Assembly (NCBI RefSeq): GCF_040938485.1
Contig: NW_027271582.1
Span: 248,001-312,000, forward strand
Length of the DNA stretch: 64,000 bases
Origin: Diadema antillarum
Taxonomy: Eukaryota
Direction of reading: 5' to 3'
The position numbers were made by a program, and so were the translations under genes. Shown here in pieces: positions 1,091-64,000 of the stretch. Under the pieces are notes generated by a model. The model saw only the letters and a program-made list of their open reading frames with translations. It did not search any database and was not told where the DNA came from. Position 1 is the first letter of the stretch; every line of letters begins with the position of its first letter.

Positions 1091-4000
1091 CTGAGGGGCA
1101 AGGGATGACAGAAGAGGGGGCATACATGAAATGAAGTATCTGGGTCTAAGGAAAACACTGTCTCCTGGCTGCATCCATACATACATACTACATTAGCAAT
1201 GGGAGCTCTTGAAGTCTTGCTTGCATGGGCATCTATCAAGATGAACATGTAATTGGGGCTTGATTTAGGTTATTGTGTACGAAATGCCTTCACACCACGA
1301 AAACTACATGTATGGTATAACTGGTACTACTGCCACCTCTGACGTGCAATTGCTATTTGTACTTATGAACAAAGACATCTTGGAGAACGCATGTTGTTGT
1401 TTTTTAATATCATATATCAAATAGCTCATTTAACACTAACAAGCAGTGACTGTCCCTCTGAATAGTCTGAGGAATGTTTATCTAGTCAGCTCAGACGTTC
1501 CTGCAAAGAGATGTCTTTTGTCTGTCTCCAGCTTCTGGCCATGTGCTACTTTGATTTGGCCACTATCAAAACATAAAGAGTTGCACTGGATACTTGATGC
1601 TTACATGTATAATTCATAATTTACAATAATGATGAATGAATAGAACGGGTCATGTTTATTGATAGGGTGCGTGCAGTGACATGGTATAATGATTGAAGGG
1701 AATCCATAATGTGCCAAAAACAACTTGAAGGATGCTTTTACTTATAACGAAAAATTACTTTTTATCTACTGAGACCAGTCAGGGCTCTGATTCATGTGTG
1801 CACATCATGAACAGATGATCCACAATAGAACACCAATCATCAAACCATTATTACTGTTATACAACAGAGCACATCATTTCCGGATTCATCACATGACATT
1901 TAGCTCGATGGATGTTAGCCCATACAGTGACAACATTGAAAGTGAGCTCATTTTTAAAAGCATTCACAATTCTCTACCATACGGAATACAGTTGATTGAA
2001 CATCTACTATGAACTATCAACTTTGTTCTAACATTCACATGTACAACATATACAATAAATTATTGATGCACCAGTAAACATTGACAGTATTACAATGGGG
2101 ATGTCCCCAGAAGCTTGCGATGCTTGGGGAAAATATTTTGATTGGATTTTAAAAAGTACCGCTGTTAGATAGTGGTGGATAGTGCTGGGATCTTGCAGTA
2201 CTTAAAATAGCTTGTGATTCTTACCTTGCAACATACAAATTGCATCAGTCTTACTTTCGTACTTTGGCTTTACACAGGTAATTTATTTGTAGTATGTGAT
2301 AACATACAGTATGCATCAGAGTAGGTACATGTACTGGCTTATGGTAGAAAATGTGGAAATAGTCTCAGCTCAAGACTGATGAAAATCCTTGCTGAGCAGA
2401 CAGAGAGGTGAGGAAAGCAGAAAGCAGCCTTGGAGTTAGGCTAAACACAGCTACACTTGTAAACAAGAGACTCTGATTGCACAGATGCCTATACGACTAT
2501 CAGAGCTGATCAGCAAACAGATTATGAGCATCATTTTTTTAAAGGAATTGAAAAATATGGAATAAGAGATTTTATTGGCAAAGCAAAAGAAAGTAGTGAT
2601 AGTGCATCTAACATCTCTATGATGTGTTGTTGCTAGCTTCTTGTTAGTAACATACCATACACCCCACATAACATACACATATCCGTACACACATTTACTT
2701 TAGAAAATGCTTTCAACACTAGTGCACAAAGTTTTCAGGCCACTCAGAAAATATGATTTGGCCAAGTACCACAATAACATAGATGTTAAGATTGACCTAA
2801 AATGTTAATGCTGCATCCTGTAAGGTTTGCATGAATAGGAATCAGAAAGAAGGGAGGAAAATATATGCAACTAAAAGTAAGTGTAACAAACATCACACAC
2901 AAACTGTGTTCTGTACAAAAGGAAATATGTACCGGTATATGAACATGAAACAAGGTATGGTAAATTATGCATTGAATCACGACCCTGTTGCACATACAGT
3001 ACCATCTGCACATCAAAGGATTAGAACATAGATAACAGGTATCACATAAATCAAACACACCCCACCTTCACTGATATTGAGATGGTAACAATCACGATAT
3101 TGTTTCTCTTTTTCCTCAGTGAGACATTTGACCACTCTTTCCCCCACACTTTCTTGCTCTAGTTTTACCTCAGGTACTGTACATGTACACTCCTCTAAAT
3201 ATACAAGTTTTCACTTTTGAATTTTAAGACATGCAAGCTCCTGGAATTTCTGGTGTCTTTTTTAAAACTTCTTATCTTTGTCCGCATGTAAAACAAAACT
3301 GTAACGGCCAAGACAGACAAAATCAAAGCATTGTACAATGGTGATGATTGCTCAGAGGAATATTTTAAGTATGGTGGACAAATTTCGATGGAAAAATTAT
3401 GGATTGCCTCTCTGTGACCAGGTAGTTGATAAAGAAAGTCCACAAGTCTCCACTCAACAGGATGAATGAGAATGAAATGTTTGAAGAGTGCGATAAGATA
3501 AACATTTGGTTGATAGGGAAGTACACAGAGATTCAATGGGTACCAATAAATATTGCGCGGGTTGAGAGTGTAGGTTGTGCAAGTGACAATGCGGAACAGA
3601 AAATGTGTGATTACTGAAAAAACTGCAGCCAAAAAGACATCAAGTACTTTTTGGTGTTAGAGTAGGTTAACTGAGATAGGTCATACAAATGTTGTAATTT
3701 GTTTTCAAGATATAATTGAGAATGTGATGCAGAAGGGATAATGATTCCATACAAAGAGAGGAAGTGATAAGAGCATTTCACTGTCTGCGTAGAAAGCACA
3801 AATGGAAGAGGTAATTGTGCTATAAACTTTATCAAACTACAAAATGCAGAAGTGCATTTATCCTGTTGGTAATTTACAAAGAGTATAACATATTAGATAT
3901 TTAAGTCAAATGTCACTCTATAGCTTCACTAGTAACATAAAGATGCTTTAAAAGCCTTCAAAGGAGAGAAAAAGAAGTGAAAAAAATCTTGACAATATAC

Positions 4001-4342
4001 AAGTAAGATATCATCTTCTGGGAAGTGCCTTCTGTGACGAGATGCTGAATTGATGCAGGAGAGTGTTTCCATGGCGATTAGAGCACGGCAAAGATGTAGC
4101 GGAGCACGGAGAGTAAGGATGGGATGCTGGAGGAGATGTACACGGCGTGTTTGAGAGAGTACATGGGAACGAGGCAAAAGTACTTCGAAGCACAGAGTAT
4201 GGGAGGAAAAGTGGAGGTGCATTAAAGTGCTTTGGATGGTTATGTAAGCAAGCAAAAAGAAAAGCAGGATTATTGTTGTTTTTGTTTTCCCCTCTGGTCC
4301 CACCCAAAGTCCACCAAGCGAGGGCGCCATGCCGTTACTTAC

Positions 4343-4438
4343 TCTCTTCTTCCGCTCGACTCATGCTTGGCTTTGAGTCGAGGAGCGAATCCATGGAGCT
4401 GGCCCGCAGGAGGCTGCTGGTGCTGGCGGCCACGTCTG
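4343..4438 (-). CDS. PARD3: Par-3 exon 15/16 (symmetric phase 1-1): (A)DVAASTSSLLRASSMDSLLDSKPSMSRAEEE
   Basis: Long C/T tract, then tandem acceptor aag/cag; A|gtaagt donor; 96 or 93 nt. RASSMD resembles vertebrate RKSKSMD. Confidence 0.8.
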
Positions 4439-5605: not shown

Positions 5606-6294
5606 GTGACCGTGCATCACAAAACGAACAAAAAGTCGCACCCCTTAATTTTACGTGAGGACTAAAAAAACGTGAAATGGGTCAACCGAGTCAATCTTAA
5701 GTTTTTCATATTTTCTGAAAGGACTATCCTTCTTCTACATTATTCTTTATTTTGGGATCTTAACATGAATGGGAAAGTGTGTTTTCAGCAGTTTTTCTAC
5801 AACCCTTTTTTTGAGGGGAGAGCAGAAAGATCAGGTATGTCTTAGAGGCTCCTTTTCATTTCTTGAAATCCTTTGCACACTCTTCACTTTCAAGTCTAAT
5901 ACAGATAACACTACTGCTTTGAAAGTTGGCATTAATCATGGACAGAATATGTTAATAAAACATGCTCAATTTCAGCTTAATCTGATAATCCCTTCATTGT
6001 TGATGCTCCGGTGGTTTACATCATGTGTTTTGTCCCATTCATACCACAGCTAGCACAGCTTGGTATAAAAGATTAAGCGCTTGAATAGACCCTGTACTTC
6101 AGAGCCTCTTTTCTCAGTTCACACTTTCCAGAGTGTGTGCTTTCTTTCCATTGTTTAGATACAGTTAGGTTAGGAGAGTCCATTTGAATTGAGTTATACA
6201 TCATTTTAAAACTTAGAGTCTGCTCTTTCAGAATCTGCCTTAACTAAAAATGCATGTCTGGCGACTTTTCATTGATTTTGTGATGCAGGGTCAT
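5606..6294. mobile_element. ~690-bp non-autonomous DNA transposon, Sola1-like, copy 1
   Basis: ~33-bp TIR GTGACCGTGCATCACAAAACGAACAAAAAGTCGC; ATAT on both flanks (AWWT TSD). Homologous along its length to 31947-32636 in the opposite orientation. Confidence 0.8.
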
Positions 6295-8020: not shown

Positions 8021-8977
8021 CTATCATGTAGGAAAGCACACAGATTGAAAGTCTGTTCAAGCCGTGCACATCTTATCACTCAGGCCATATGGTCAATAAC
8101 CCGTGAGGACCTGATTGAAGGTCGTACATGCACCAGCTCTCATATAAAAAATCTCAGCGTGCTAAAATTACATTTTTCTATTCATTCACCTACAGTGTAT
8201 TTGTCTATTTTTGCAAAATAAAGCTGCTAAAAAAAGGAAAATAATAGAAAAATGTGAGATATTTTTGGTCATAACTTCAGGAATATTCCTTGTTATGTAA
8301 CAAGTGAGGTATAATTGGAAAGGATTTGTTTTGCTCCATCTCATGAGGGAATTATTTCAAAATGTTACAAGAGGCTTAAACCCATTTTGCAATCAAACTC
8401 TTCATATATTTCTTATAATCATTTTTCTTTTCCTTTCATTGCAAATGCTATTGTTCCCTCAACACACCAGATATATAACATCTCTCTTTGAATCATTATC
8501 TACGTCATACACAGAGATGCCAACTTTTTGACGTGGCGAAACAGATGGAATCCCCTAAAAAATCCGATTTTTTAGAGGAAAATCAGCTTTTCATGAAATC
8601 TTGACACGACTACTAGCCCATGGGCGCTGGGCCGGTATAATGTCAGTAAAACTGTTTCCCTGGTAAGGAAGGGCAAGTAAAATGGTGCTACTTCATCAAC
8701 ATCGATGAGAAAAATGTAAAGCATCCGCATATTTCCCGCCCATTTGGGCTCGTCATTCAAAGTTTTTGTACGAGTTGCAGGAATTTAGTGTTACATCTTT
8801 CTATGCGATGAAGCGGTTTTCTGCAGTTCATATTGGCTTCATTTTTTTCTTTGTTCGAAAGATGAAAAGGCATACATGTACTCTCAAGAGGTGATATCGT
8901 ATTTCACTCTGTTTATCGTACTAAATATTGGTTGGCATCTCTGCATACACAGTAAAGAAATGTGATCCAACACTCAC

Positions 8978-11997: not shown

Positions 11998-12372
<375 letters not shown>

Positions 12373-13368: not shown

Positions 13369-13385
13369 TACACACACACTCACTC

Positions 13386-13426: not shown

Positions 13427-13428
<2 letters not shown>

Positions 13429-17068: not shown

Positions 17069-17577
17069 CTCTTTATGTGCCACGTTCACACGTTGATTCA
17101 GTTGATGGCATGCCAAGTTCGCATATTCTGTTCAAACACACAAACCCACCCAAACTGATTGATAAATCACAAAATGTCACATTACATCAAAAGCATTTCT
17201 TGCAATTTCGTTCCTGTCACATGTAGCTAGCATTTTATGTAGTGATTGGCTTCATTGCGTCATGTGGTGTAATGGATTTGCGAGTCAATTTTCAGTTTCT
17301 GTCATTGTTTTGTGTGCAAAAGTCATGCCTCTACAATAATCTACCTAGTTGTCATTTGACCGAAAAACAAATCATAGATTTACATGTATCATACAATTTA
17401 CATCAAAGCAAAGCTTTTCTCTGCAACGTTGGCCAAGATATGTCCAGTGTAACAAAAATCTATAAAAGTTACATAGATTTGAAAACAAGAATGATTTCAA
17501 CAAACATAACTACATATCATGTTGCTGTCTTAGAATAATGTGACAATAACGGGATTTACACCATGGCGCATAAAGAG
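17069..17577 (-). mobile_element. ~505-bp piggyBac-like non-autonomous element, copy inverted relative to 26645 and 38020
   Basis: TIR ctctttatgtgcca ... tggcgcataaagag|TTAA. Internal sequence is reverse-complementary to 38020-38524. Confidence 0.75.
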
Positions 17578-17864: not shown

Positions 17865-19788
17865 CTGGGAGAAAAGGGGGGGGGGGGCGGTGCGATGGAA
17901 AAGTTTATTATATACAGTGTTATGCGTAAAATAATTGCAGGGTTCTGTAACGGTGATCAAATTACTCTTGTGGGTATTTGTCGCTGTGCTTTAAATCTGC
18001 GTCGGTCTACATCTATGTGTGTTTGTGTCTATGTCGGGATGTATATTTGTGTCCTTGAGCTCATGAACTTGCCTTCAGATAAAGGATGCCAGCACATGCC
18101 ACCAAGACATGTCTGTCAACGGTGGAGCAGTGCGGAAAACAGGCACCCTCCAAGCTATGAGTCTGATATACCTACATTGTATGTATATTTTCCACAAAGG
18201 TTACACTTGATTTCGGTCAATGTATGTTGAGTCTACACACATGTATACACCAGCTGATTGTTTCATTACTTCATTGTTCTTTGTGCCCGGGGCCTGTTGT
18301 AATTTCTGGCATGAAGTTGCAGACAGCATCAAAACAAAATAGGCCTACAACTTTGGGGCATTCAAAATAAAGCATACGAATGAAACAATGGCAAGTCATA
18401 TCATACAAACAGTGAATGTGATGTTGTATGTTTGTATGTATGTTTGTCTGTCTGTGTTTGCACACCAACATTGCAAGTGATGTCATCCTGCCACAGTGGA
18501 AAACAATGTGCTTTGGCAGTGATCGACGGGTACTTTCAATCAGCTCCATGATGTATTTTGGTGGGACTAAAGTGGGACATGCAGGGCTCACACCCAGACA
18601 ACCTTGTGAGGTCAGCTGCTTCATCAGGAGACAAACTATCATGCTAGCCTTATTCAACTCTTTTTGAAAGCATTTTCAGCAACATGCCTTTCCACTCGCA
18701 TCAATGAGAACTTCTGCAAACCTTTAAAGTTATCAATAGCTACCCCGGCTCTCATGTTAAACTTTGTTACTTTCAGCTGTATTTATAAAGCTTACAGAGT
18801 TGTACCTCCAGCTCAAGTACAAAACTGTACTTCTTGTACACGACTAGCTATCAATCATCTACTATGCAAATTCTAATGTACTCTACACTCAAAATCACTA
18901 CCACTATCACTACGTATCAGCTCACATCTAATTATGGCACACAGGTTCCAGATTAGTTTGTAAGCCACTGCCCAAAAGGAATAGATAAAACCCTAAAAGA
19001 AGCATTACAATCAATGTTCCCAATGTCTAATAGTTTTGAATAAAAAACTTGAATTATTAACTATAAATTTTTAAAGAAAATGTGTATGATGACAATAAAT
19101 GCTAATATGATATGAGCACTTCAAAGAATTTTGCCTCGTGCCTCTCAAGCCAACCTTTTCCTTTCATGCAATAGTTTTCCTTTTGGATATCAGAAGCCCA
19201 AAATCCATGTTTGCTTGAAAAAGGCTAACCACTCCAGGCCATAGCATTTGGACAGGTGTACTTGATGGCTTACTTCATTTCTCACATGTCGAGCTCAGAC
19301 AGTTTGACCCCTGTTTTGTCTCCCCCCCCCCCCCTTTTACTTCAATTCTTGCTCTTTTTTAAAGTCTCTCTCAAACCCAAACAGGTAGCAAACGTCCTTT
19401 AGCCTTAACACATCGGAAGAAAAAAAGGCAGCATGCCTGTTGTATGATTTGTCAATGACAGTTGTCTGAGCATGTCTGCACTTACTCTGATCATCACTGA
19501 GGAGGGGGAGATAAAGAAATGATAGATTCCTAACTGTGTGAATACTGAAGCTTTTGTTTTGGTTTACCCTACATTGCTTCAGGAAAAAGGGAAAGATTCT
19601 CCCATCACGTCATAAGAAGATACAGGAAAAAATTTCATATTTTTGGGTAGTTACAAGTCAACGTACCAAGTGAGGTATCACTGGAAGCTTTTACTCTATT
19701 TGATGATGAGCTATTGTACTTTAAAATGTTTAGAAATGGCATTTCGCCCACTTTGCGATTTTAAAAACTCAATTGGATGCCCTCTCAC

Positions 19789-22790: not shown

Positions 22791-23985
22791 CCGGTGGTAG
22801 CCTTGGAACTTCATCTTTTCAGATGTCGGCAACTTGTTCAGCCTAGTTACAACTATGCCTGTAATTTGCAAAACTGGGTAACGGTCCTATGGATGACAGC
22901 TATGACAAATAGGCCATTGAACTCTTCCAGTCCAGACAAACCTTTCTGCTCAGTTAACTTCTCTTTCACTTGATATTATTTTGTTTCATTTCTCCTCATA
23001 TATGCCATCTCTCTCTCTGCTAGGTAGTTTGTACAAAGGTTGTATGTTTTGTGTCTGCCTGCTGGTATTCATTTCTTTCTCTGATCCCCCGGTCACACGT
23101 TGCAAGTCGGGCCATAAAGAGAGGGCACTAGGGACAGAAATCAGCCCAATGAGAGTGATTCAGGGGGACATTTTACAGACCAGCAACAAGTGCAAACCAT
23201 GTTCAGATACTTGGAAGTTCCACCAATGACCTCTTAATCTCTATGATGTCTGAATGTCAGGCCCTCCAAATACTATTAAATGGCAAGCATGGATGTGACC
23301 ACTTGTTCCATAGTGAGTGATAAATCACGCTACAGGGGCCTTGACTGCAATGAGTTTGTGGGTCTTTGCACTTCACTTCTACTACAGTATAGGGCCTACA
23401 CTTGTTGTAAAATTCAGAAGCACATAGACGGTACACATACAATTGTAGATGGACATTTCTTTTTAAAGTACCCCACCATTCATATGACTTTGCAGGTACA
23501 AACTGGAATTTGGCACATGGATACAATCACTTGTCTTTTTGACAACACATTTGATACAATGTATTGTATGTTGCATATAAAACATTTGTTGTGGTACAAT
23601 AATGCGACTTCTGGTTGAGGTTGTTGTTTTTTTCAATTTTTTTAACTGCACTCATCCAAGTCTAGGTAAACATGGAGCAGAAAAGCTCTTCAAAGGTGAG
23701 GGAGGATGATAGGGAGAGAAAAAAGACATGTGAGGAAAGATACAGATAGATTGTGGAGTCCAGTGCGATGCCTGATTGAATTGAAACAATTAACTACATG
23801 TAAATGGCTCTCAGCAGGCAAATCGGGTGGCGTATACCTGGACTATTTTCAAGGATATCTTATTAGATTGGCTCCCATGGTTGATCTTCCGGCGTCACGT
23901 CTAAAGAGTGCTACATGCAGAGCTCTCCATAGACAATGCTCTTGTCATAAATCCAACAGCTTTATAACAAGCTCCAATCTCCTTG

Positions 23986-24140: not shown

Positions 24141-24555
24141 AATGATCAGACTTTCACTGATCAAGTTCTACCTGATCTAATGGTGTTGCATTCACTCAAT
24201 CCATAGGCCTACATATATCCTACAGGTACAGGTGAACTTATACTTTAATACAATATGGTACCTTCTCAGGCAATAAAGGGGAGTTCTTGTTTTATAATTA
24301 TATTACACATTCCATCATGGCATCTAGTTCACCCAAGTTATACAATGCCCACCCAACAGCTTGACCTTAATTACATAACATGCAGCTACAATGTAATTAT
24401 CTCTTCGTACAGCATCTACACTTACACTGTCACTAAATACGAACATGTTCATTATAAAAAGATGAAGACACTAATGGCTGGAACTTAGAGTATTATACCC
24501 TAAAGAAGGGAAGATCTACATTATATTTCATTCTTCCCTGAACCACAAAAAGGTA

Positions 24556-24764
24556 CTGTAAAAGTGGATATTTTCGCGCGACTAATTTTTCGCACTTGGC
24601 CGGATAAGAAGAATTTCGCATGTTTTTAGTTCCATGGAATCAAGATATCAACTACTGGAACATATGGCACACAAAAATATTCGCATGCTTTTCTTTTCGC
24701 GCTAGCTTCTGGTTGCGCGAAATGCATGAAAATTTCAACACCGCGAAAATTCCCACTTTTAGAG
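24556..24764. mobile_element. TA-flanked MITE (CTGTA family), degraded right end
   Basis: TA|ctgtaaaagtggatattttcgcg ... cgcgaaaattcccacttttagag. Confidence 0.6.
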
Positions 24765-27123: not shown

Positions 27124-27143
27124 TAAGGGATAGGGCCTACATT

Positions 27144-34200: not shown

Positions 34201-34390
34201 CTAGCGGGGATGACCATACAAGAGGAACAGTATGACACAGATTAGAAAAGTTGCAAATCATTGATTTTTAGGCTATAAGTTGTAAAACATTTATTATTAA
34301 AAGTATCCGAAAGTTTCGCAACTAGAGTCTCAAATCAGCTCTATTCAGTACTGCGAAAATTTTGCTATTATAGGCCTACAGGTGGACCTG

Positions 34391-40808: not shown

Positions 40809-43800
40809 CTGAGGGGGAGAAAACACACAGAGGAAAAGTGATGATAGTTGAAACTCATTAGATTTAAATTCTGCATTGAAAGACAAAAGCATGAACCCAC
40901 ACACGGATACATTCAGAAAACTATTAAAGTGAATGATTAGTCTGACTTCAAGGTGTTTGTATGCCCCCAACCAAAAGGCCCGTCTCACTTTGAGTGTGTA
41001 GGGAGATACTGCGAGTCTGAAATGGAGACTACCCATATCAAGGTGTTACCGAAGCAGTGACTAACACAGTCTGCACATAAAGACACCATGTAAGACATGC
41101 AAGGGGTACGAGAAAATGGATACTTCATAATTATCAAGTCTAATGAATGAAGGCGTCACACAGGGAGATGCAGACAATGACATAACAACCAGCGTGGATA
41201 TTTCTTCAGCACTGGTTGGGGTGGGGAAGGAGATGTGACATTTTAGCGGAGAACTAGACAACCCGTCTCTCCCTTCACCCACCTTCCGGAGTTGGTACAG
41301 TTCCATGCGTAGTTAACATTCCCTATTGTTTTGATTGATGACCCTATTACCACGGAGAAATTTGATCAGCTAATGGTGACGGGGAATGGGAAGGAGGTGA
41401 GGGGTGGGTGGGGCAGACGGGAGGTAGTAAACCAAAGTGTGTCACATTTATTGTCAGTTTGCCAACGAAATTAACTCACACATCACCTCACAGTTCTTTT
41501 AAAACACAAATATGTTTCTCTTTCACATCACAAAATCCAAAGGCTTTCAAAAAAATACTGGGCATCACTTCTGTCCTCGCCTGTCAGTCTAGAAGCAATA
41601 ATACTATCAGAAGGAGAGACCATTCAAGATGTTATACTCCTGTATTTCATCTCAAAATGCCCGCGATCTCCATCCACGTTGCCAGGGAGGCTCTTATCTC
41701 TCTGTGGGGTTGAAATTCGTCACAAATTTGTCACTAAACCCAACGTCGGAATGTCGATGCTGGAGCGCCCAATTTTCAACACGTTCTCATACCCACGGTG
41801 GAAGAAATCGATTCCCTCAAGCAGCTCTCCCCGAACCCCGTATTACACCCCAAAGTTTCCCCTCCCCCCTCCCTTCCCAACTCCCTCTCCTCAGTTGACA
41901 CAATAAATTAGGTAGCCAGCTGAAAGATACACCATTCTATTTCAGGCATCCCTCCCCTGCAATGTACAATGTGTTCATTATTCATCACCTGCAGCAAACA
42001 AGGTCTTATCAGTAGGTTCCATCAGGCAACATTTTGCCCTCTTCCTCTCGCCCTGTCTCTTCAAGGCAAGAGCCCTACATTTCCCAGCCCTCAAAAAAAA
42101 TAATACTGACAATAACAATAATTAAAAAAATAAAAAGATAAAAAAATCCATCTCATTTTCTCGTCAGCAAATTGCCATTTTTTATTAGGTGAAGACGTAT
42201 GCAAGTTCACATCCATTCCTTTGTTTTAATATCATTAGTGCTTCATTGAATGTAAACCACTACACCTTGTAGGCCTACATGTATCTTCCTTCCAGCCTTC
42301 TGATGCCAATTATTTGATTTTAATCAATACTTTTGAAGGTAGTACAGCTTTCGATTCATAGACTTATTTTCCTCCATTTGTATTTATCAGCAAGCCACTG
42401 AAAAAAAAATATATATATATATAAAGGGTATTACAGACCTTTACAGTACAACTGCTTTTTCACACTACCTTTGCATTTTGTTTGTCCAGGTTGATATCAC
42501 ATACCAAACATGATCTTTTATACTTCAATGTCATAAATCTTACACGAGCCACATTCTGCTGCTGAGGCTATTAAAAAAAAAAAGGATAACTTTTAAAAAA
42601 TGCCATAACCTAACCTTGAAGAGTTTATTTACAATTGCCAAAGATTGATGGAAACAACAGGTGGTATTCCAGCAATTGTTCATTTTAATAACAGCACATA
42701 AACAAATGGGTAGATTTGCTCCATAAATTCATACTGTGATGCAACAGAATTTATCAATATGGTCCTTTGGGCAGGGACTGCATATTTTCTTTATTAAAGG
42801 ACAAGTACTTGGTCTTTGTACTGGCCCATCACTGGAATTTAGTTGCCCTCAAGCAAATGGGGTTGTAATACCCTGACAAAAGAATAAAAAAAAAAAAAAT
42901 TGCAAAATTATCCCTGCAGAAGAATCACGTTTTTCACAAGTCAGTTGGGCTAGACTATAAAGAGCAGCATTTCAAGTGTACAAATTCATACATACTTTCA
43001 GCTCTGTTGTGACCTTGTGTACAACAGCATCTTCCTACAGTTTATGTCCAGTTCCTGTGTGTACAGGCTCCATTATACCTTGTAATAGTTGTAATTCTTC
43101 CCCCTCCCCCCTCCCCCCTTGCCATTTGAGACTGAAATAATTCACTCCAAATTGGTCATTGTGTGACTGACATGGCACATTGTTATGCGACCTCAAGGCC
43201 AAGGAGATCAGATTCTTGACTTTGCCTTTCGGAGGATTTTCTTCTTTTTTTTTCGGAGGGGGGGGGGCATTGTTGTTCCTTAAACTGAAGCCATGGTGTA
43301 CCACTCTCGGCACAATTGAATCTACCCTTCAAACCTACAAGAAGTACCCCCCCCCCCTCAAAAAAAAAAAGGCACTATAATATTCGTAGAGTTTGAACAC
43401 AAGAGTACTTCATCATACATTCATATTCATATCGAAAAATTAAGGAGTCCCTATGAATTTCAAAAAATGACCATCATCACATTATACGACATTGCTTTTG
43501 AATACCACAATATTGATTCAATTGGTTGCGCCAAGTATAACAGAGTAATATGCCAGGAGTAACAATTTACATACATTGATTAATTTGTCCTTTTCTGTGA
43601 AGACCAAGCAAAAAGCCAGCCTTTTCAGTTCACATGTTTGTACTGGCTACCTGTTAATACTCAGGATCTAGTTTGCATGCATTACTTGTTGCTATGTTGG
43701 GCAACCTATGACACATTTCCTCACTGCCGAGAACAACCTATCTGAACATGTAACATGAAATATGAATTTCATATTTGCGTAATTGATATTATAACCTGTG

Positions 43801-44098: not shown

Positions 44099-45672
44099 TA
44101 GTTATGGATGTGTGTGGATGCAGTCTTGGCTAAAACAGAGTTAAAAAAATGCTATTGTAAACTCTGCACAAGGCTTTCTGTCATCATCAGGATAAATTTG
44201 CAATCCTCAGAGAGATGGGGTGGGGGACTATATGGGAGGGGGAGGGGCTAGTAGCAGAGCCCGATTTGTGAAGAGTCCTGAAAAATAAACAAGAATGTGA
44301 TGAAATTTTGGCTCAAAACTGAAGCCGCCACCACGTGGGGGAGACTCCCTCTCGTCCCTTTGCACACTCCACGTACTCTTGCTCAGCGTTCTCAGGAGTA
44401 CACATGTATTTGAGATTGGTATGGCAGTGGTTTGTGTGAGCAGGTCCAAGCTATGAACGCATTTCAAAACAGCTTTGCATATATATCATTCAACTCTACA
44501 GAAACGTGTTTGCGATCTTATTTTCAGCATTTCAGAAACACCTTCTAACTCCACGATCAAAATAGCTTTGCCTTCTTATAAACTGCCCAAACTCCCTGAA
44601 AGTTGGTTGGAAACCTTAACCCCTTGGAGACGAGTCCTCAGAATACTCGGGCAGGTGTCTATGGGAAATGTCTGTTGGTATAGCAAAATCAGTCCGTTCT
44701 CAACGGGTTAATTCTTGAGTGGGAAGTGAGTTGATAAACGCACCCAATACTCGTATCTCATCAAGATATGAAGAAGAGAGTCAGCAGAAATGTCTATAGG
44801 CATTCAGCCCTTGTTGAGTCCCTAAAAATCACCCATGGCTGCCCTTGTGTGTGTATGTGTATGTGTGTGTCTTGTGTGGTATATGTGTGATTTGTGTGTG
44901 TGGGGGGGGGGGGGAGGTGGGTGCACTTGTGGGAGTGAGTTGCGTATTAAAAAAACTTGAGTAGGGCCTATGCCTTTGCCTGGTCCATATCATTCCTTGT
45001 ATTGCCCTGCTGTGCAATATAATTCCATATTAGTACATATCAATTCATCTCCACCCATGCAGAATAGTAGGCATTTTCTGCAGTCAGAAGAGTAAACATT
45101 GGCAGAACAAGAGGCCCCTTTCTGGTTCCATGGAGTTAAGGAATTAAAATGTCATCAACTTTTTGGCATATTTATCCACTTTCACGGACCTACCCCTCTT
45201 TTTAAATATGTCACTACTTTAATGGTACGTAAAACTTTTTCATTCTTTTTCTTTTTCATTCTTACAGCAATTGTCCTACAAGGGTTATCTCCGTTTGTGT
45301 TATTCATTGGGTTATTTGAAGCCCACTGACACATCACAGCGCGCTTGGGCAGTGTCTATTATCACCTCGTATCTTGACAAGATTCAACTCATCACTTATC
45401 GCTCACACACATATAAACAACTGAGGTATGTCAAAATAGCCAGTGACAGTAAAGAGAGGGAAATTCAGAGGACATTCTATTGCCATACCCCCAGAGCGCC
45501 AAGAGGTAACAATTACTGTCAAATCAGACGACTTTTCTTGCCCTTCATTATTCCATTCAAGGACGCGAGGAGACCGTTTACATTTGTCAGCAAAAAATCA
45601 AATCTGGATCTGTTTTGTTTTGTTTTGTTTTTTGGTTCCTGGCATTCTGCACTTTTGTTGAGATTTACTAGA

Positions 45673-46399: not shown

Positions 46400-46500
46400 A
46401 TCGTCATGATATATTATATTATATCATATCATATTATATCATATTATATATTATATCATATCATATCATATAGGCCTATCATATATCATATCATATTTAC
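46400..46500. repeat. (ATATC/ATATT)n pentamer satellite with an embedded TAGGCCTA
   Basis: atatcatatcatattatatc... interrupted at 46471 by taggccta. Confidence 0.85.
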
Positions 46501-47089: not shown

Positions 47090-47460
47090 AGGTACTGTAT
47101 ACCATTGGGAACAGGGATTTTAAATATGTTTGAGATATCACATTTGATGCCTACAACCCTGTATGTCTAGGTCAGTTGTATCGCAAAACATCCCACCGTA
47201 TAAATATTTTGCAATACAGCCTAAAATATAAGGATATATCATTATTTTCCTCAATAAACCATAACTGAAGACGGTTTAGTCTAGAAACATTCTTCTTATA
47301 TCTACTGTTTACATTTTGTATATTTTACAATATTTAACATTGATTAAATTGCTTCAAATTTTTACAGTGGTTGTTTCTATCCCTAACTCACATTTTAGAT
47401 CTATTTTGAAGCACCATAAAGCTGGGTTTTTGTTTCATCTGCAAATGGTAAATTATGCCT
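47090..47460 (+). mobile_element. Kolobok-type non-autonomous element (~370 bp), copy 1
   Basis: TTAA|aggtactgtataccatt ... aatggtaaattatgcct|TTAA. Homologous to 50872-51230. Confidence 0.8.
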
Positions 47461-47646: not shown

Positions 47647-48151
47647 CTGTCAGAGACAGACAAGATACACAGAAGCACACGGGGATACATACACAAACAC
47701 ACGTACACACGGTGTACACACACTCGAAGAGAGAAATAATATTGTATTACAGAATCGCAAAGTTTCATTTTCCACATATCATTGAGATCTTGTCAGATAT
47801 TACTGTTTGTGTGTGTGTGTGTGTGTGTGGCTTTCATATGTCATAAAAAAGGCACAAAATTAATGCAGAAAGCTTCACAGAAGCTGGAAGATATTCCATC
47901 AAAAACTCAAAACTAGGTACAACCCAAAGTACAGTGTACTTTGATAACAAAATAAATACCATTGCTATCATTATTATCACTATCATCATTATCATATCAC
48001 TGTCATTATAAGTATCATCATTATCATTACTAATACATGTACTACTATTAGATCAAATACTAGATGGTATTATATCACTGGCATCATATTTGTGTAAAAT
48101 GAGGCAAGAAAATGGAGTAATTCAGTAAAGCCACAAAGTCTGAACAATTAA

Positions 48152-50257: not shown

Positions 50258-50871
50258 TCCCAAAAGACAGTATGCCCCTGCAATACTTGCTGCAAGCCAA
50301 CATGTAGAAATGTACAACTGGCTGAGCTCCACATATCTCACGAGTCAGCCCGCAAGAAGTAGTGGGCTTTACCTTCCTCCTGTACAGCAAGCGGCAAATT
50401 TGCTCCCTGGTCATTTCAATTACTCCAATTATTCAGGCACTAAGTCAATTGCTTTCCCCAGGCAAGAAAGTCAACGCACGTGATGTAAATCTTTTTTTCT
50501 TCTTCTTCTTTGCATTGGGTTTAGAAGACAGAATATTCATCCTGCTGGCTCTTTACACTTAAAGGGAAACTGTACCCACAGGTTCAATTTGACAACAACT
50601 TATTATATGAAATCCCTTATAGTGTCCTAATTGAACCAAGAAGAAACTTCCTCTTTTTTATCTTTGACACTGCCATACACTCATAATTTGAGAGATTTTA
50701 GCAAATGCCTTACAATAATACATCTGAGAGGAGTTTAATCACACAAATTCAATATGATTTTGCACATCATAAGACAGAGTCCAGATAAATATGAAATTAT
50801 GTAGGCCTAAATGCACTTTAAAGCTCATTAGCAGTGTTACGCTTGAGGAAAATAAAACATTTTGTGATTAA

Positions 50872-51230: not shown

Positions 51231-53252
51231 TTAATGTTTTAAAGATGATTCTTCATACTCACACTAATCTGGCATATTAAAGTGATTTGTACAAAACAGG
51301 GAACAGATTGTACTATTCTTCTTGGGGACGGGCAGCCAAACATTATGACAAATGGCCTGGATGGGAGGGGGGGGGGGGGTGTGAAGGATTTATTCTCTAC
51401 TTCAAACAACATCTACTCAGGAAATGGATGCATCTGGAATCCATGATTCACATTAATATGGGGCCGGAATTGGTTCACAGTCCTCAAAAGACAAATTGCC
51501 CATCTACAAGAATATCATGTTATGTACAAGGCGGGCAGCGCTTTAATTCGATGTAACAGGATAGGAACAGATGGAGTGTTTCCCAGTTCCACATGTGACC
51601 TTCCACCCAACTGGACTGAACAGGGAACAGGAGATGTTGCAATTTGTGGCACAAATGAGCGAGCCCTGCCTGGTAAACACATACCATGCACTGGGCACAT
51701 GAATGTCAGTCTTGCAACGCATTAATAGGCCATTAGAGGTGAAACACTTTGAGAAGTGTAGGACCACCACCTACGGATGAAAAGTCTAGATACAGCTTGC
51801 GCATCACCTGGGAGCGGTAAACCAAGAGTTCAATCCTGGGCTAATATTTGGCATACCTATGGTTTTGGGGGCCACTTGATCAAATATTTGCTCAGTCAAT
51901 AATGCCATATGTGGCAGGTACAGTGTGCATGAGGGCACAATTTATACAAAGTAGGACATTCCCTACGGGGTTGATTCCTTGTTCCTAACTGGAAGACAAC
52001 CTGCATGTCCTGACATTCATGGTCCAGAAAAAGCTACAGTTCAGAGTAATTGGTAGACATTTAGCCTCGTTTCCCAGCCCTAACCCACCCACAAGTGGGG
52101 GGGGGGGGGGGGAGCCCTCGGATAGACTAGCAAGTATTGGTGCAACATCAATGGGCGAGTGGGAAATGCTCTTCACTTTGGGAATATTTTTGTGTAAAAA
52201 GATTAATAAATAATCAAGCAACTAAAGAAAAAAAATGATAGGGCCTACATGAAAAACTAAATGAAATAATAATAATAAAGAGAGATAAAAAAGTACAATA
52301 AAATAAAATTTAACAATCCTAACATGTACTACTAGTGATAGTGATACATGTTATCTAAGATCATGATGTACGTGAACAAAATTGGAATGTTACTAAGGAG
52401 CAGTATAAATTTCTACAATACAGAGTGTAGGCCTACAACATTGTAGGCCTACATGTAGCTTTTCGTAAATGTTTGTCCATCACAGTAAACACTGCATACA
52501 TAGTAGTTTACATCTTTACCAGTCCCACCTCACCCCCCCCCCCCCCAACCTTCAAGGAAACGAAGGCTGTTGAAGAGCATTTGGAGCCTGACGCGCACAA
52601 ATCGATGACTGTTTACCACCAAGCGGCCAGCGAAAGAGGCATTTTCGGGGCGAGGTCCCCCGGTTTGGTATAAGTGGGGCCACTTGGGGTCACCTGCAAG
52701 CCCTCCGTGGCGGCTGGCCTAGGGGACACCAAGAAGTGGTGATGACAGTATGTTGGCAGCCTGTATCAAAACACAGGCGGCTACCCTGTCACTGGCGACA
52801 GCTCACATTATACACACTCTCAAGACCAATACAGGGGGGGGGGGGGGGAAAGAATAGGATAGAAATTCTTCTCTACAGCTAAAGAAAATGCCATTCCCCA
52901 TCACCAGAAAGACAGTCACGCAATCAACAGGCCCCTACCAATATTTATTTTCGTCCCTTCATTATCAATTCCTTTCTTCTACCTTTAATTCTTGCCTTGT
53001 CACAAGTCACAAAGATGGATCTGAGTGTAAAGCCTCAACTTGTGTGTATTATCTATCATTCCCCATACACGCAAAGGCCTCTTTGGCACTGGTATCTGTC
53101 ATTGGCTCAGAAGTTGCAGGCACATGTTACAGTTGCTTAGTTCAAGTGTGCGTGGTGTTCTATTGCAAGAAACAATGGATTTTACAGATCATCTATTTGT
53201 AACTAGGCTTATATGTTTGAGTGCTGAGAATGCATTAAAATCATGAGGACTA

Positions 53253-53783
53253 CTGTATACGCTATAATTTTCGCGTACATAAATTTTCGCGAATTACCGC
53301 TGTCACACATTTTCGCGAGTGGTTAAATTCGCGATTGGGGGACCAGAGAAAATATGAAGTGGCAAAGAAAGTGTAAATTTTCAACTTACTAGCAAATAAG
53401 AATGATACTACAGTGTAGTTATACACTGCATGAAAAAAACTTACCAAACTCTGCGAACTAGTAAGTTAGAATTCAACATTTTTGAAGTGGTTAAGTCCAT
53501 CGCGCTAGATTTCTGATGAGTGGTCCCCTTGCGATAATGGATTGGCTCTCTACAGTATTCATGGTAGACGTGAACGTGCGTAAACAAGCTTTTAATAGTC
53601 AGTATGGTCTGTTCGGTAAGTCGTGACATGGTATACTAGTACTGAAATGTTCGTATCATCAAGGCAAGGGATTCCTTTTGGAAGGTAATATTTTCGCGTG
53701 TTGTTAATTTCGCGAATAGCTCCGGACTCGCGAAATTCACGAAAATAAAACCCCCGCGAAATATACATGTATAGCGTATACAG
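53253..53783. mobile_element. TA-flanked MITE (CTGTA family), 531 bp, well preserved
   Basis: Perfect 14-bp TIR TA|ctgtatacgctata ... tatagcgtatacag|TA; many TTCGCG/CGCGAA subterminal motifs. Confidence 0.8.
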
Positions 53784-55959: not shown

Positions 55960-58576
55960 CGGGGAGGGTTTAATGAATGGAATATGGAGTGCACCAATGA
56001 AGGATTCCTCAGAGGGCATAATGAGCCCAATTACCGGCAATGACCCCAATTACGACGGGCCATGAGTTGATCTCCATTCATTTATTTACGGCACTATGGG
56101 CCGGGATATTTCTCCATCTTCCCCTCCCCCTTCTCATCTCATTTTGATAGCATCACCAAGAGTCAATTTTATAGCTTCATCACTGCCAAGTTTAACTAAA
56201 ACTACCAAGCACTGACTGTATCCCTTTCCGAATTAAATACAAAAATCAGTTTCTTTCCTTTTTTAATTTGGATGGCCATGATTTTTTTTTCCATCTTCAT
56301 TGTCATAATTAATTAAATCTTTGCAAAACAGCAAATATCAATTCTTCAGAGAGAATGACATTCATCAGACCTCCTCCCTCCCCCTTGATTAACATGTCTG
56401 AATAGTCAGTCATTAGGAACCAATATCTGTAGCATCCTCACGTGGGTAAATTCATAGATTCTTGGTGCTTCAAAACCACTAGACCACTAGTCGAGGGAAC
56501 AAAGAGCATAAAATTAATGGACATCTGCCGAACAAAAATACAGGACCCTTTATAGCTGATACCTATTCAGGAACATGAGAGAAAATTTGTTCTTCTAAGT
56601 GCCATGACATTATAACTTTCTGTGATCCAACCCTATTTCAAACAGCACATCATGGGAGATACATCATGTATCTTTAATATCAGGGACAATTGTATTTCAT
56701 AAAAAATAGTGAAATGACAAGCCACAAAAGTTTCTACACCAAGAATACACCATTAATCATTGCTTCTCCAATCACATCCTGCCCTGGCATTTTCATTTCA
56801 GTTTACAATATGATGACAGAAACATTACTTCATTGCCCTGAAAATGACATCACTTGGGGTATCTAATAGCTCGTCCAGAGACTACTAAATGCACCATAAA
56901 TTACTGCAAACTAGGCCGTTTCTTCAGAGGGCAAACATTTTGACAAATTATACCACTTAATTTGAGTAAACTGCTCTGTACTATGATACGGGCGGGGCTT
57001 TTGAACAATTTGTACAGTTGTCTTGGTTGAACTCCAATTGAAAATGTCTTGGTGGTACATGTATATATGTAGTAAAGTGAACTTATTGCACATGTCATTT
57101 TTGTCTGTGTTTATATACATTGATAGCTACGATCTTGGAGCTGCAACAACATTGATTTTCACAATTCTTATTTAAAGAAGAATTAAACATCTTTTACTCC
57201 TATACTTTGTCACAAAAATATTCCCACACTAGGACAGCTAAAAGAGACATAATTTCTAATACTTTTTAATTTCCATTGTAACTGTAAATGGGCTTAAATG
57301 GGGATTTTTTTTTTTCTTTAAGATTGCTGGGGGGCATGTTAGGGAGCTCAGGCAGTCACGACTCCACAGCAAATGATGCTTTAGACTTATGATTGATCAC
57401 AAGCGAAATGTAACGGCTCATTGACTAATCTCCAGGGAGCAGCAGTACAGACCTTGTTGAAGGATATAGGCCTAGACCAATGCAAAACAAAACGACACAA
57501 AAGAACAGAAAAAATGAGAAAGCAGTATAAACAAAAACAAGGAATAAATGCAGTCTCCCTGTCGCTGGTTTATTTAAGGAGTCATGATCGAGAATTTCTG
57601 CAAGATGAAGAAGTTCAGGGCAACAATTAGGAGGGTGTGGTACCTCTATGTGTGATGACAGCCATGGTAGGCCAGAAAGAAGGTAGTTTTATACTGTGAA
57701 GATCATTTTCCCTATGTGACTACACATACTTGCACAGCATTGAGAGTTAGAGGCCTATCTCAATGGAGAAGACATTGCCTCAACTGCCATGACTGATCAG
57801 TTGCGGCCACTCGTGCAACTCGAAGGATCAAAACATGGCTTGCGCTCTCGCCTAGAAAGCGACTCCAGGGCGACATCCAAGACGTCTCCCAACAAGCTGA
57901 AAAAGTATTTGCCCGGAAATCGCAGGGACGTCACCGTGACATCTCTGAGAAGTCTTCCTAGAGCAGTTGCGGACACATATCCGCAACGTTTCTACATCGG
58001 CACCAATAGCATGCCATGGCGTCTCCACAAGGTTGCAGACACGTCTCAGAGTCATCGCTTACATCAGTCTCCACAATGCAGCCACAACTATAAAGGGGAT
58101 GTCACAGAGATGTCGCACAGATATCTCCAAGACCAGCTGGAGTCTAGGAAAAGTTTCTGAATAAAATTGAACAAATTTGATTCTCCAGTGACTCCCACCA
58201 GACCCAGCTAGTTTCCAGGAGAAGTTACCGAGACATCTCCGCAACCAGCAAGACTTCAGTCGCCACCAGGTCGTAACTTAGTCTCGGAGTCCATGAGGGT
58301 ACCTACTTTAGCTCCTCAACTTTTACCTTACTACAAGAGCACCTTTCCCATGCAGCGCAATAACAAAATTAATAGGAACCACACGTATCAACTATCAGTG
58401 AATTGTCAATTACAACAACAGATATTACTATCTGGGCGATGACAAACAACAAAAATTATAAGGAAATCATGATGATGATGATGATGGAGATAATGATCAC
58501 AGCCAATGACACATACAATAATAATGATGATGACATTTTTATGACATTTGACAGCAATGGTGAAAATTATACTGAA

Positions 58577-59126: not shown

Positions 59127-60569
59127 CTGCAAAACATGATGGAATATTCAAATCAAACCCGTGCACTGTACAATTAATCAATCTTACGCATGCTTTTAAT
59201 GGCAGAAAATAGGCCATCAAAATTACATACAATTTGTACATTGAACTCTCGCCAAGAAAAAGAAAGGGGAGGGGGGCTTTAATGCTTGCTAGTATACGAG
59301 CATTGCTGAATTACCTCAAGGAAATGAATATACATGGTACATATTAATATTCTTAGGGAAGTTATTGACTACTGTACAGTAGTTACAACAGTTCAGAGAA
59401 TTCATGTTTTTCACACATTCTTTCACATCTTCACGTATTTCACCTGAGCACACTTTCAAACCAATCACAAAGTTACAAAACTTCATTTTGTGAAAGCTGT
59501 TACCAGTTATAAAAAAAAAACAAAAACAAAAACAAGCAAACCATTATAAACTTCAATAATGTTCACTGGTATAAAATTCACACTATAGCTGAGGAAAGTG
59601 CCCTCTATAGCACAATGATGGCACCTTACAATATAATTAGCAAATCTAGATGTCAACTGGCTTTGGTATTTGGGCATAATGCATGGTGAGTGAAATAACT
59701 TAGAGGCTACTTACATTGTAGCACTAGCATTTGATATGGCATGTGCTTCAGTGGAACATGGCCTGCATTTGAGTCATAAGATGTACAAGGCTGTATCACT
59801 TGACATCACTCTAATGCACTACAGCAAGCTACATTGTATGCCAAGCTTGCGCCCCCCCCCCCCCCCCCCCCCCACCCCACCCAACCCCCCTTCGGGGTTT
59901 AAAGTAAAAGGCAATACAAAGAATATACTGCTACAGATGTACATGTATCACTTGAGCATGAAATGAGGCTTCGCTGACCAAGACCATCAGTCCAAAGTTA
60001 TTCCACATTACTGCATTGACACGTCAGATGGCACATTTCTATGGTCCATTCTTCATAACACCGTATAGGTTGTCCCGATTCCTTCTACTGTGGTCATTGC
60101 CTGTACATACAGTGCATTCAGTCATTTTAGTGAGAGCGAACATACTGTACATATCCAGGCTCAGTCAACCAAGCATCAATACACACAGATTTCTCAATCT
60201 ATGGTGCCAATCAAACCGGCAAGCAGAACGGACATTTTGATGGTTGATGACCAATTCAGATTGTACTGTCAAATCTACATGCACTAAACACCATACATGT
60301 GTTGTATGTTTGATATGTGCCCAGTTCAGCCTATCCTAGGCCTACAGGGTGTAGTTTTACAATGATTAACATCCACATTGACATAAAGTTTGGAGTTTTC
60401 TGGAGTGTCATTGAGTAAAGAGCCCAGAAAGGAAAGTCTTTTGCAAAACAAAACCTTCATTATGGATACTCCTACCCCTTATGGTTTGTTATCTTTGTTT
60501 GTTTGCTTGTTTGTTGTTAATATCAGATGGTCCCCCCCGACTCCCCCGCCTTCCAAGCCTATCAGATTG

Positions 60570-61200: not shown

Positions 61201-62990
61201 CTGGAAAACACTTCCTCCTTAACATCACAACCTCCCTCCCCTTCCTGATAGTGAAAATCACATAATGAATGCTTTTTCCAAGAAAGAGAGCTATGAGTCA
61301 CACTAGAGACTTGTTGCTATGATACCACTTCAGTATCCGGTATCACGGGCGTGGACCCATCACCAGTCGTGTCGATTCATATTAAGGTTTTGAATATAAG
61401 GAAAACCTCATCGCAAAAACACTTATCGCATGAGGGTTAATGGGTTCGGTTTAGGGAGTCAAGGCTGTTTACTCCTGAGCAAAATGTGATCTTAAAGTGC
61501 CATTCACATTTGAATTCTATTCTTAATTTTCCGATCATGAATCATGACACATGCATGTTTATCACAGAGGATAAATTTGATGTAGCCTTGTAGATAAACA
61601 GTCACTTTTTATTCACAATATCAGCTCTGGATGAACTACAACAATTAACATCTTCCATGTTTCAAAATTCAGTATAATCAAGTAGAGCAATAACCTCTCA
61701 CATTTTCAGTTCATCCATTACCAAGTAGCCATTTGAAGCAATTTGAAAATATCTTTTTTATTATTATTTGTAATGCTCCAGTTGTAAAAAGGGACAGGGT
61801 ATCATTTTGATGCATTTTGCATTTTTTCCCCAAAAGCCACTTCTTGATTATGAATATTGTACAATGTGAAAAGGGTCCTGGCCAGGGGTCAATTCACCCA
61901 TGTGCAGATTAGACAGTGACAGTGCTTTCTATACACATTCACCCCAAGTTTAGAACCAGATGGATGATACACGTAGGACGTGAAATTTCACTCATGTGTA
62001 ATGATGACAGTACACTTTTGCACAACTGCACCACTAGAAAATCCATGTGTAAATACATTTGTACATTACATGCGTATGTCAGAACAACAACCCAACAACA
62101 GTATGGTACCTATTCTAGTATTCTAATCAAATGAAAGACTATGGTCTTTTTGCAAATACAACATTTCTTGTGAACCACAAACAAAGCAGAGCCCCCCCCC
62201 CCCCCCAAGAAAAATAATTTTTTTCAGCGAAACCAAGTAGATAACTCCTCGGCGAAACATTCAACGCAGCAGCCTTCTAAGTGTACACACAGGACCAAAT
62301 GACAAGATTATGATCCAGGATCCAAGTAGACTCAATCGTAGCATTTTCCACTGAGTTCACTAGAGATGTACAGACCTCTTCGCCACTTAAATGATGTACA
62401 ACGCTGGCGTCAAAAGAAGCTGGTGCACATTCATTCAAAATCCCATGTCTATTGTGCCAAACACAAAATGACTCAAAGACCAGATTATGAATCTGGACTC
62501 ATGTGCATACGCTGAGCACAACAAAGCCTTTCCTTCGAGATTCACATGAATATAACAATCCCGAATGCACACTATTCCAGTATGAAGTCAGAATGGTACC
62601 ACAACTACGCACTGGGAGTAATGGAGTGAATACAAACCCAGATAGCGTTACTGATTCTTGTGGTATACTGAGTATTATACACAAAAAGATCACCTTGGGT
62701 TTCAAGGGGGCGGACAGAGGATCCTATGACCAATAAAAACGTCTTTTACTCGTTGGGGGTTAATAAGATGGAAGCTCTTCGTTCTTGTTTACTATTCTTG
62801 TTTACTATTCCCCAGCAGAGGTCAATTAACGGTGATTCACACTGGACTTTGTTTACATTTTCAAGCTGCCCTCTCACAGTCCTTTTGCAACTGACCACAA
62901 CAAAGACCCATAGCGAAGTGAGTGGATATGAAAGTACACTCTAAATGCAATTCCCAAGAAGGAGCTAACGGAACCCATATTTCACCTTAC

Positions 62991-62996
62991 ATGAAT
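62991..62996 (-). CDS. Weaker candidate 6-nt microexon (ATT CAT = IH) upstream of the first in-window exon
   Basis: ccttttgtgcactgtccacag|ATTCAT|gtaagg. Frame-preserving, with TGC close to the 3' splice site. Could be chance. Confidence 0.22.
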
Positions 62997-64000
62997 CTGT
63001 GGACAGTGCACAAAAGGCCCATTCGCATGCAAGAGTTATTGACAGTCTTTGAATTGCATAGTAAAACTCAGTTTTACTTTAAATAAACAACCATTCACAC
63101 ATGGCCACAGAAATCATTCTTTTGCAATCGAAGGCTGCTGGCAGTTTTTTTCAGTGTGTGTGCCTAAAAAATGGCCAGATCATGACTCCAGGCACCCTAA
63201 TATGTGAACCTACATGTAGTGTGGTGAGTGGCATTATGGGATTTAAAAACAAAACAAACAAACAAACAGAGTGAAAGGTGTTTTTTTTTAACTGTGTGCC
63301 ATTCACACACACTGCATTAGACATATTGGACAGTTTAAAAAAGAATCACAAATGGAATGATTTTTGCAACATGATGCTGATCACAGATCTACAGATCAGA
63401 AGAAATGAATTCTTTGGTGTCCACACACAAAACTATAATAGCAGACTTTGAATCGCACTACAAATACAAATTTTTGAAAACATTAATTTTGGGTGGGTGA
63501 TGATAATGAGAAAGGGACAAAATGTTGTATTCCAGAGTAGAACAGTCTGAGCACGCTGACAGATGTGCATTGCTTCTACAGTTGTACTGTGCAATATTTC
63601 AACTGCAATTTATATTCAGTATTCAGTGCAGCTTGATGTTGCAGGCACAAAGAAGACATGGTATCACACACTATCATACATCGTAAGCAAGTTCTGAAAC
63701 CCTATCCCCAGCTGTCCTCCTCCATCTCAGAAACACTTCCTGCTTGCCTGAAATGCAATTCATACGCCTTATCTGGTCCAGCCAGAGACACAAACACAGA
63801 ATATACACTAAAGTGGTATACTGCACTGCATACACTGTACATCCGTGATCAGTCATTACAATTTCAGATACAATTACACAAATACTGTACCAGTGGGAAT
63901 TGCTAACATAAAAACATACAGCTGTACCACATTTATGATTTATGGCACCTCGGGAGGTGTTTACAATGGACTTCATGGCAGTTTACTCTGTACTGGATGC

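Follow-up and report, generated by a model that had tools for sequence, protein, structure and literature searches.

Why should short palindromes framed by the dinucleotide TA recur so often between flanks that have nothing in common? The question is raised by a stretch of 64,000 nt from Diadema antillarum (assembly GCF_040938485.1, contig NW_027271582.1, positions 248,001 to 312,000; hereafter the window), in which TAGGCCTA (TA-GGCC-TA) is present 12 times, TACATGTA (TA-CATG-TA) 15 times and TAGGGCCTA five times. An earlier reading of the sequence alone (the sequence-only reading) had listed these sites and suspected scars of transposon excision. All of its positions are exact and the 15-mers in which the words are concatenated at 42269 and 52443 were verified; its value of about 37% G+C is off, since the window has 40.7%. 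One additional variant, TAGGCCCCTA, was located at 27552. We consider it probable that transposons of the cut-and-paste kind, with TA as their insertion site, left the enriched words behind as excision footprints that became fixed. The evidence is strongest for the words that begin with CA, while the GGCC class shows the same TA-duplication signature and is not fully explained.

The enrichment, which had been estimated only roughly, holds against Markov backgrounds of orders 0 to 4, for the window as well as for 200 kb sampled independently from 20 other contigs of the same genome. Given per strand-collapsed site, the expected number of TAGGCCTA in the window is 0.85, 0.49, 0.34, 0.31 and 1.2 at orders 0 to 4, and that of TACATGTA is 1.8, 1.4, 2.9, 2.9 and 2.7; orders 5 and 6 come near the observed counts only through fitting on the motif's own sub-words. 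CpG is at 0.47 of expectation in the window and TpA at 0.71. By z-score TAGGCCTA ranks second among the 8-mers of the window, behind poly-C, and first once simple sequences are set aside; no words are more over-represented there than the poly-C/G 8-mers. In the independent sample TAGGCCTA again leads the non-simple 8-mers (18 sites against about 1.2 expected), and TACATGTA reaches 38 against about 9.5. Genome-wide, 128,068 TAGGCCTA sites were counted in the 1.75-Gb assembly, i.e. 73 per Mb, compared with 188 per Mb in the window, which is thus a rich region. The flanks of the TAGGCCTA and TACATGTA sites are unrelated between sites and therefore no long repeat stands behind the excess of the words. 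The finding is independent of the assembly gap at 50119-50257: words were counted separately on either side of it and no motif lies within 500 bp, the nearest being those at 50802 and 48034.

Both words belong to a larger class. Among the 136 strand-collapsed words of the form TA-NNNN-TA, enrichment is almost confined to the palindromes GGCC, CCGG, GATC, CTAG and CATG. The ranking is led by TAGGCCTA (19.7x), followed by TATATATA (8.2x, a microsatellite), TACCGGTA (7.3x), TAGATCTA (5.7x), TACTAGTA (5.6x), TACTACTA (4.5x, a microsatellite) and TACATGTA (4.3x), so that palindromes make up six of the seven top words (hypergeometric P of about 7e-6, our own arithmetic); the remaining ten palindromes range from about 0.5x to 2.2x. 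Longer relatives, namely TACAGTA, TACAATGTA, TACACTGTA, TACAATTGTA, TAGGGCCTA and TAGGGGCCTA, are enriched too. The dependence on TA is also seen from the tetramer: 34 of 562 GGCC sites have TA on both sides and the runner-up flank pairs, which are G-run variants, occur at most nine times.

How the words arose can be read from repeat copies that carry them and copies that do not. These paralog comparisons show that the words arise as micro-insertions directed to TA, with duplication of the TA, and support that they are neither point substitutions nor products of base composition. The window copy of a 518-bp miniature inverted-repeat transposable element (MITE), at 53253-53783, has three private insertions in comparison to eight other copies, two of which duplicate TA: TACATG at 53764 and TACAGTG at 53409. 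At both sites the ancestral state is a single TA in all eight paralogs. A GGCC event could be polarised in the same way in a family of about 212 bp, where the copy at L001:2964 reads TCAAC-TAGGCCTA-CTGG; among the 100 matches listed (625 in all) 80 have plain TA, 16 a point variant and four TA-X-TA, X being AT, G, CACA or GGCC. The second polarised GGCC case is the 13-bp insertion at window position 25269, parsed as TA-GGCC-TA-CCTGG-TA; a flank-anchored pattern search of the genome for this site matched only the site itself and its haplotig. In an all-versus-all alignment of about 300 kb, 6-bp indels are in excess, and the TA-duplicating insertions found there carry CAG, CTG, ATT, CATG, CAGT, GGCC, ACGT, CAGTG, CAGCCTG and CAACCCTG.

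An unbiased spectrum was obtained with a genome pattern anchored on both sides of a TA-rich 10-bp stretch of the 518-bp MITE, TATACTAGTA, allowing for 3-12 extra bp. Besides 628 copies with the exact consensus, 68 copies carry such extra letters, corresponding to about 10% of the anchor-intact copies and to the same order of frequency as point substitution in this stretch; the 68 rows represent about 45 distinct sequences, since some are haplotype pairs or inherited variants. By our reading 55 of the 68 have the form TA-X-TA, and the remainder are tandem duplications or 3-bp changes. CAG is the commonest X; CTG, CATG (six rows), CAGCTG, CAGTG, CACTG, CAATG, CATTG, CATTTG, CTAG, CCGG, GATC, CGG, GGC, GGCA, ATT, CAA and CAAG occur as well. 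A self-search with 13.7 kb was dominated by this MITE (13,240 first-look candidates, about 94% identity). The same kind of X recurs in an older family of foldback elements of about 550 bp: of its 357 matches 100 were listed, and about 30 of these are clear TA-X-TA. In the window, a foldback element of about 550 bp at 48148-48697 is about 72% identical to its own reverse complement and has TTAA-like flanks; at least nine copies are present in about 300 kb. The TA-bounded extra letters thus keep the target duplication that characterises a footprint of the Tc1/mariner type.

The elements from which such letters could stem are resident in the genome. Within the roughly 300 kb examined, TA-flanked elements with CA..TG ends are abundant and form several MITE families, and for one nested TA|CA..TG|TA copy the empty site is present in seven paralogs. 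The 518-bp family itself reads TA|CTGTATACGC...GCGTATACAG|TA in 10 of 10 copies with unrelated flanks; its CT..AG ends make it a donor that fits the TACTAGTA scar. For CA..TG and CT..AG alike, the inserted letters are the terminal letters of resident TA-flanked elements. Because of the TA-X-TA insertions and the abundance of both kinds of TA-flanked elements, TACATGTA and its relatives are to be read as Tc1/mariner-type excision footprints. The excision origin put forward by the sequence-only reading is therefore supported for the CA-ended class, which has abundant donors and the full Tc1/mariner footprint spectrum, whereas the GG-ended class is left without a donor in the same 300 kb.

Elements of the Tc1/mariner type duplicate TA on insertion. 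On excision their transposase cuts the non-transferred strand 2-3 nt within the element, so that each flank retains TA and a few protruding 3' nucleotides from the element end, and TA-X-TA results once the break is sealed by end joining. Tc1 and Tc3 cut 2 nt inside the element, and the canonical footprint of CAG-ended Tc1/Tc3, Sleeping Beauty and mariner elements is TAC(A/T)GTA, that is, TA, two or three terminal nucleotides and TA. The transposases of Sleeping Beauty and mariner nick 3 nt inside the element, and the resulting 3' overhangs give rise to footprints by end joining (PMC7827188). After excision of Mariner/Stowaway elements the target duplication stays behind together with letters of the element ends, in contrast to the Tourist/Harbinger kind, which is reported to excise precisely (PMC4561436). 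The palindromic tetramers (CATG, GGCC, CTAG, GATC, CCGG, ACGT) presumably arise either from two letters kept per end and joined or from two 3-nt overhangs that anneal via a self-complementary dinucleotide; in the latter case a GGC overhang that anneals to itself through GC would yield TA-GGCC-TA, with TA-GGC-TA as the alternative product. The observed insertion spectrum is the one expected from the published excision chemistry.

As with Tc1/Tc3, Sleeping Beauty and mariner, insertion is at a duplicated TA with CAG or CTG as the commonest X, and CATG, CAGTG, CACTG and CAGCTG are present alongside TA-flanked CA..TG donors. The mechanism is textbook, the scale is unusual. Summed over the clean scar classes (TACAGTA, TACATGTA, TAGGCCTA, TACTAGTA, TAGATCTA, TACCGGTA, TACAATGTA, TACACTGTA, TAGGCCCTA and a few longer ones), the excess amounts to about 250 sites over 264 kb, which corresponds to about 1.4% of 18,279 TA sites; the figure is approximate and the TACAGTA tally takes in intact element ends. 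Fixed germline scars thus occur about once per kb, at roughly 1 in 70 TA sites, and reorder the word frequencies, unlike known Tc1/mariner footprints, from which the present case also differs in that its strongest class, GGCC, is without a known donor. In rice, a comparison of two species documented no more than 94 excisions, most of which involved deletions and filler DNA (PMC4423477), whereas here clean TA-X-TA scars dominate, in hundreds of thousands. Short palindromes at former transposon sites are also left by P and hAT elements; however, their footprints involve 7-8-bp target duplications and longer palindromes, in contrast to the TA duplication and constant tetramer core found here. A hairpin-type hAT/P footprint was rejected, as the core is constant and the flanks are unrelated, so that the palindrome is not derived from the flanks. 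A literature search of incomplete coverage gave no report of scars dense enough to dominate word statistics, nor of the words themselves. The present analysis contributes the quantitative insertion spectra, the polarity of the GGCC event, the Harbinger-type nature of the GG-ended families, which are not the donors, and the clustering, age and repeat avoidance of the GGCC class. In this genome small insertions stem to a quantitatively major extent from the departure of transposons and not only from their arrival; the scars distort word statistics and indel spectra and offer a record by which past transposon activity can be dated, including that of a presumed GGCC family that has otherwise vanished.

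For the GGCC class several candidate sources were considered and rejected. The GG-ended MITE at L009:8398-8852 (C82; about 455 bp, ends GGCTGCGTTCACA..., 1,482 first-look candidates, 1,713 terminus matches genome-wide) is of the Harbinger/Tourist type because of its 3-bp TTA/TAA duplications. Some copies of this family stand in head-to-tail arrays (C270, C1249, C1584). A second GG-ended family (GGGCAAGTCC...) has TTA/TTTA flanks. Neither TTA-GGCC-TTA nor TAA-GGCC-TAA scars were found among the 562 GGCC sites, and a PIF/Harbinger footprint with TWA duplication does not apply, T before or A after TAGGCCTA being present in only 17% of cases. The situation resembles the plant contrast of Stowaway/Mariner with Tourist/PIF-Harbinger (PMC4561436), in that TA-duplicating elements leave scars and Harbinger-type GG-ended MITEs leave no visible ones. 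ISL2EU and other PHIS groups have AT, ANT, CWG or TNA as target duplication, or none (PMC4482050); they were discarded as a source, since the duplication is TA here and AT in ISL2EU. In the repeat at L015:2683-7994 the sequence continues past the apparent end, the match of the pair at 39367 and 42277 is limited to the motif plus CAA, and a telomere-repeat origin (TTAGGG) does not fit the flanks of TAGGCCTA.

The region around 27131-27950, which could be taken for a motif-bounded element, is really an unrelated insertion with a 13-bp target duplication. About 806 bp (27144-27949) with a T-rich start are placed between perfect direct repeats of TAGGGCCTACATT and look like a reverse-oriented retrocopy, mediated by a long interspersed nuclear element (LINE), that landed on an existing scar. 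The TAGGGCCTA sites at 27131 and 27950 count as one event, because one older site was copied as the target duplication. Reads of a related species cover 22500-28499. The assembly holds a second haplotype (C318:807062-810548, L030, 99.2% identical to window 22564-26052), so that its 1.75 Gb are probably close to twice the haploid size; among the differences between the haplotypes are repeat-unit indels of TGTAT (5 bp) and GTT (3 bp).

With less confidence we propose that TAGGCCTA was left as a scar by a TA-targeting family that is older and by now rare or extinct, with ends starting GG or GGC, possibly GGCCTAYA. This family would have hopped conservatively and locally and would have left about 128,000 scars in the assembly. 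The GG-type sites are clustered (nine gaps of at most 300 bp against 2.5 expected, P = 0.0005) and the TACATGTA sites are not; genome-wide, 1,532 pairs of TAGGCCTA lie within 30 bp, compared with about 290 expected from site density by our own arithmetic. Clustering and close pairs fit local hopping. The close pairs include TAGGCCTAGGCCTA, TAGGCCTATAGGCCTA, TAGGCCTA-TG-TAGGCCTA and TAGGCCTA-CATG-TAGGCCTA, GG-type scars also chain with CA-type scars, and the pairs can be read either as successive scars at neighbouring TAs or as the remains of one inverted repeat that begins GGCCTACA and was retained at 5+5 to 8+8. At C1:734284-737019, 13 TAGGCCTA sites are gathered in 2.7 kb and twice overlap as TAGGCCTAGGCCTA, which is either a hot spot or an array. 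By rough arithmetic of our own, the excess of single-transition neighbours would put the mean age of TAGGCCTA near 7% divergence and that of TACATGTA at roughly 3.5%. The related scars TA-GGC-TA and TA-GGCA-TA are present in the 518-bp MITE family. Going further, TAGGCCTA might be the trace of an undescribed TA-targeting cut-and-paste lineage, or of a domesticated enzyme derived from one, with ends GGC, perhaps GGCCTAYA, with some 10^5 scars and almost no copies. We offer this only tentatively and rather doubt it; if true, it would be a transposon known only from its footprints.

A number of results weigh against an excision origin, most of them for the GGCC class. The four motif sites that could be compared between the haplotypes, in 3.5 kb, are all common to both, none of the four shows an allelic series of empty, filled and scarred states, and in the read contigs over 22500-28499 no indel at a motif site is among the best-supported ones listed. 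The small sample of about 300 kb yielded no TA-flanked element with ends GG..CC, and the GG-ended candidate at L009:8398-8852 is preceded by TAA or TTA with proper 3-bp duplications. The two recorder families together show about 85 TA-X-TA events, with CATG about eight times and GGCC never, and the 3+3 product TAGGGCCCTA is absent though TAGGGCCTA is common. The paralog-bearing 17.8% of the sample contains none of 44 GG-type sites and only two of 53 TACATGTA sites; age could explain this avoidance of repeats by the GG-type sites, as could constraint or a different origin. Finally, some of the close TAGGCCTA pairs belong to units repeated identically at several loci, and a minority therefore travels inside repeats.

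The lack of a GG donor and of GGCC in the two recorder spectra would also be accounted for if TAGGCCTA alone arose by TA-directed micro-insertion other than excision, for instance by a host or domesticated nuclease that cuts at TA, with templated fill-in, or as a tiny palindromic mobile unit. The fallback of the sequence-only reading, an uncharacterised TA-directed insertion process, would thereby be confined to the GGCC class. The occurrence of GGGCC and GGGGCC but not of GGGCCC and the recurrence of perfect nested palindromes such as TAGGCCTA-CATG-TAGGCCTA and TAGGCCTATAGGCCTA point in the same direction. We nevertheless regard such a process as unlikely: the TA-duplication signature of TAGGCCTA is that of the proven scars, the sibling words with CATG and CTAG match resident element ends, scars can far outnumber copies where a cut-and-paste element moves conservatively, and the decay of neighbour words suggests old events.

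Still less likely is that many TAGGCCTA sites mark decayed elements still in place, the word being made up of the TA duplication and the six opening letters of their short inverted repeat (GGCCTAYA...), and are paired for that reason. YA does come next after the motif in 47% of cases, compared with 19% for TA in general, the sites cluster within 300 bp, and motif-bracketed palindromic units exist, some of them at several loci. However, a flank consensus does not extend past +2, the two sides of the motif are independent (GTAGGCCTAC accounts for 22,499 sites genome-wide, 17.6% of all TAGGCCTA sites), nearby pairs have no inverted-repeat match beyond the motif, none of the 44 sites lies in a detectable repeat, and the two polarised cases are clean insertions. 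That the palindromes are selected protein-binding sites, or by-products of base composition and CpG decay, is very improbable. In its favour are the suitability of palindromes for dimeric binding proteins, the clustering and repeat avoidance of the GG-type sites and the fact that TACGTGTA and TACACGTA can decay to TACATGTA, but Markov models up to order 4 leave the counts unexplained, the words are private insertions inside neutral MITE copies, 128,068 copies of TAGGCCTA exist, and the single-substitution neighbours show neutral-looking transition decay.

Table 1. Motif sites, scar chains and repeat copies in the window (window coordinates).
Feature	Position	Strand	Remark
TACATGTA	1305..1312	.	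word match
TACATGTA	1602..1609	.	word match
TACATGTA	2326..2333	.	word match
TACATGTA	3180..3187	.	word match
TA-CAGT-TA	6160..6167	+	6-bp insertion vs paralog
TACATGTA	8873..8880	.	word match
TACATGTA	17381..17388	.	4-6 bp lacking in two distant window paralogs
TAGGCCTA (TA-GGCC-TA)	18340..18347	.	exact word match
TAGGGCCTA variant	23390..23398	+	word match; in both haplotypes
TACATGTA	23795..23802	.	word match; in both haplotypes
TAGGCCTA	24204..24211	.	word match; in both haplotypes
~212-bp MITE copy, CTGTAAAAGTGG... ends	24554..24765	+	family polarises TAGGCCTA in copy L001:2964
Double scar TA-GGCC-TA-CCTGG-TA	25269..25283	+	13-bp insertion vs local paralog; haplotig identical
TAGGGCCTA plus CATT, left copy of 13-bp target duplication	27131..27143	+	
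TAGGCCCCTA variant	27552..27561	+	
TAGGGCCTA plus CATT, right copy of 13-bp duplication	27950..27962	+	paralog contigs stop at 27949
TACATGTA	30914..30921	.	word match
TAGGCCTA	34371..34378	.	word match
TAGGCCTA	39367..39374	.	word match
Chain TA-GGCC-TA-CATG-TA	42270..42283	.	
TAGGGCCTA variant	44962..44970	+	word match
TAGGCCTA within AT-rich microsatellite-like stretch	46471..46478	.	
TA-CAACCCTG-TA	47152..47163	+	10-bp insertion vs paralogs
TACATGTA	48034..48041	.	word match
TAGGCCTA	50802..50809	.	word match
TAGGGCCTA variant	52239..52247	+	word match
Chain TA-GGCC-TA-CAACATTG-TA-GGCC-TA-CATG-TA	52428..52457	.	
~518-bp young TA-flanked MITE copy, CTGTATACGC... ends (CT..AG)	53253..53783	+	donor-type and recorder family
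TA-CAGTG-TA	53409..53417	+	private 7-bp insertion, same 518-bp MITE copy; 8 paralogs without
TACATGTA	53764..53771	.	private 6-bp insertion at TA of 518-bp MITE; 8 aligned paralogs without
TACATGTA	57056..57063	.	word match
TAGGCCTA	57467..57474	.	word match
TACATGTA	59940..59947	.	word match
TAGGCCTA	60337..60344	.	word match
TACATGTA	63211..63218	.	word match

Two further observations were made alongside the motifs. The strands of the window are asymmetric in composition, with a GC skew of +0.42 at 22000-24000, where G-rich repeats similar to GGGTGG and GGGATGG are present, and of -0.29 at 12000-14000. At L021:5860-6730 (C23) a unit of about 66 bp (TAGGAGCCCGATTCACAT...) is repeated in tandem, with at least 10 units in the array.

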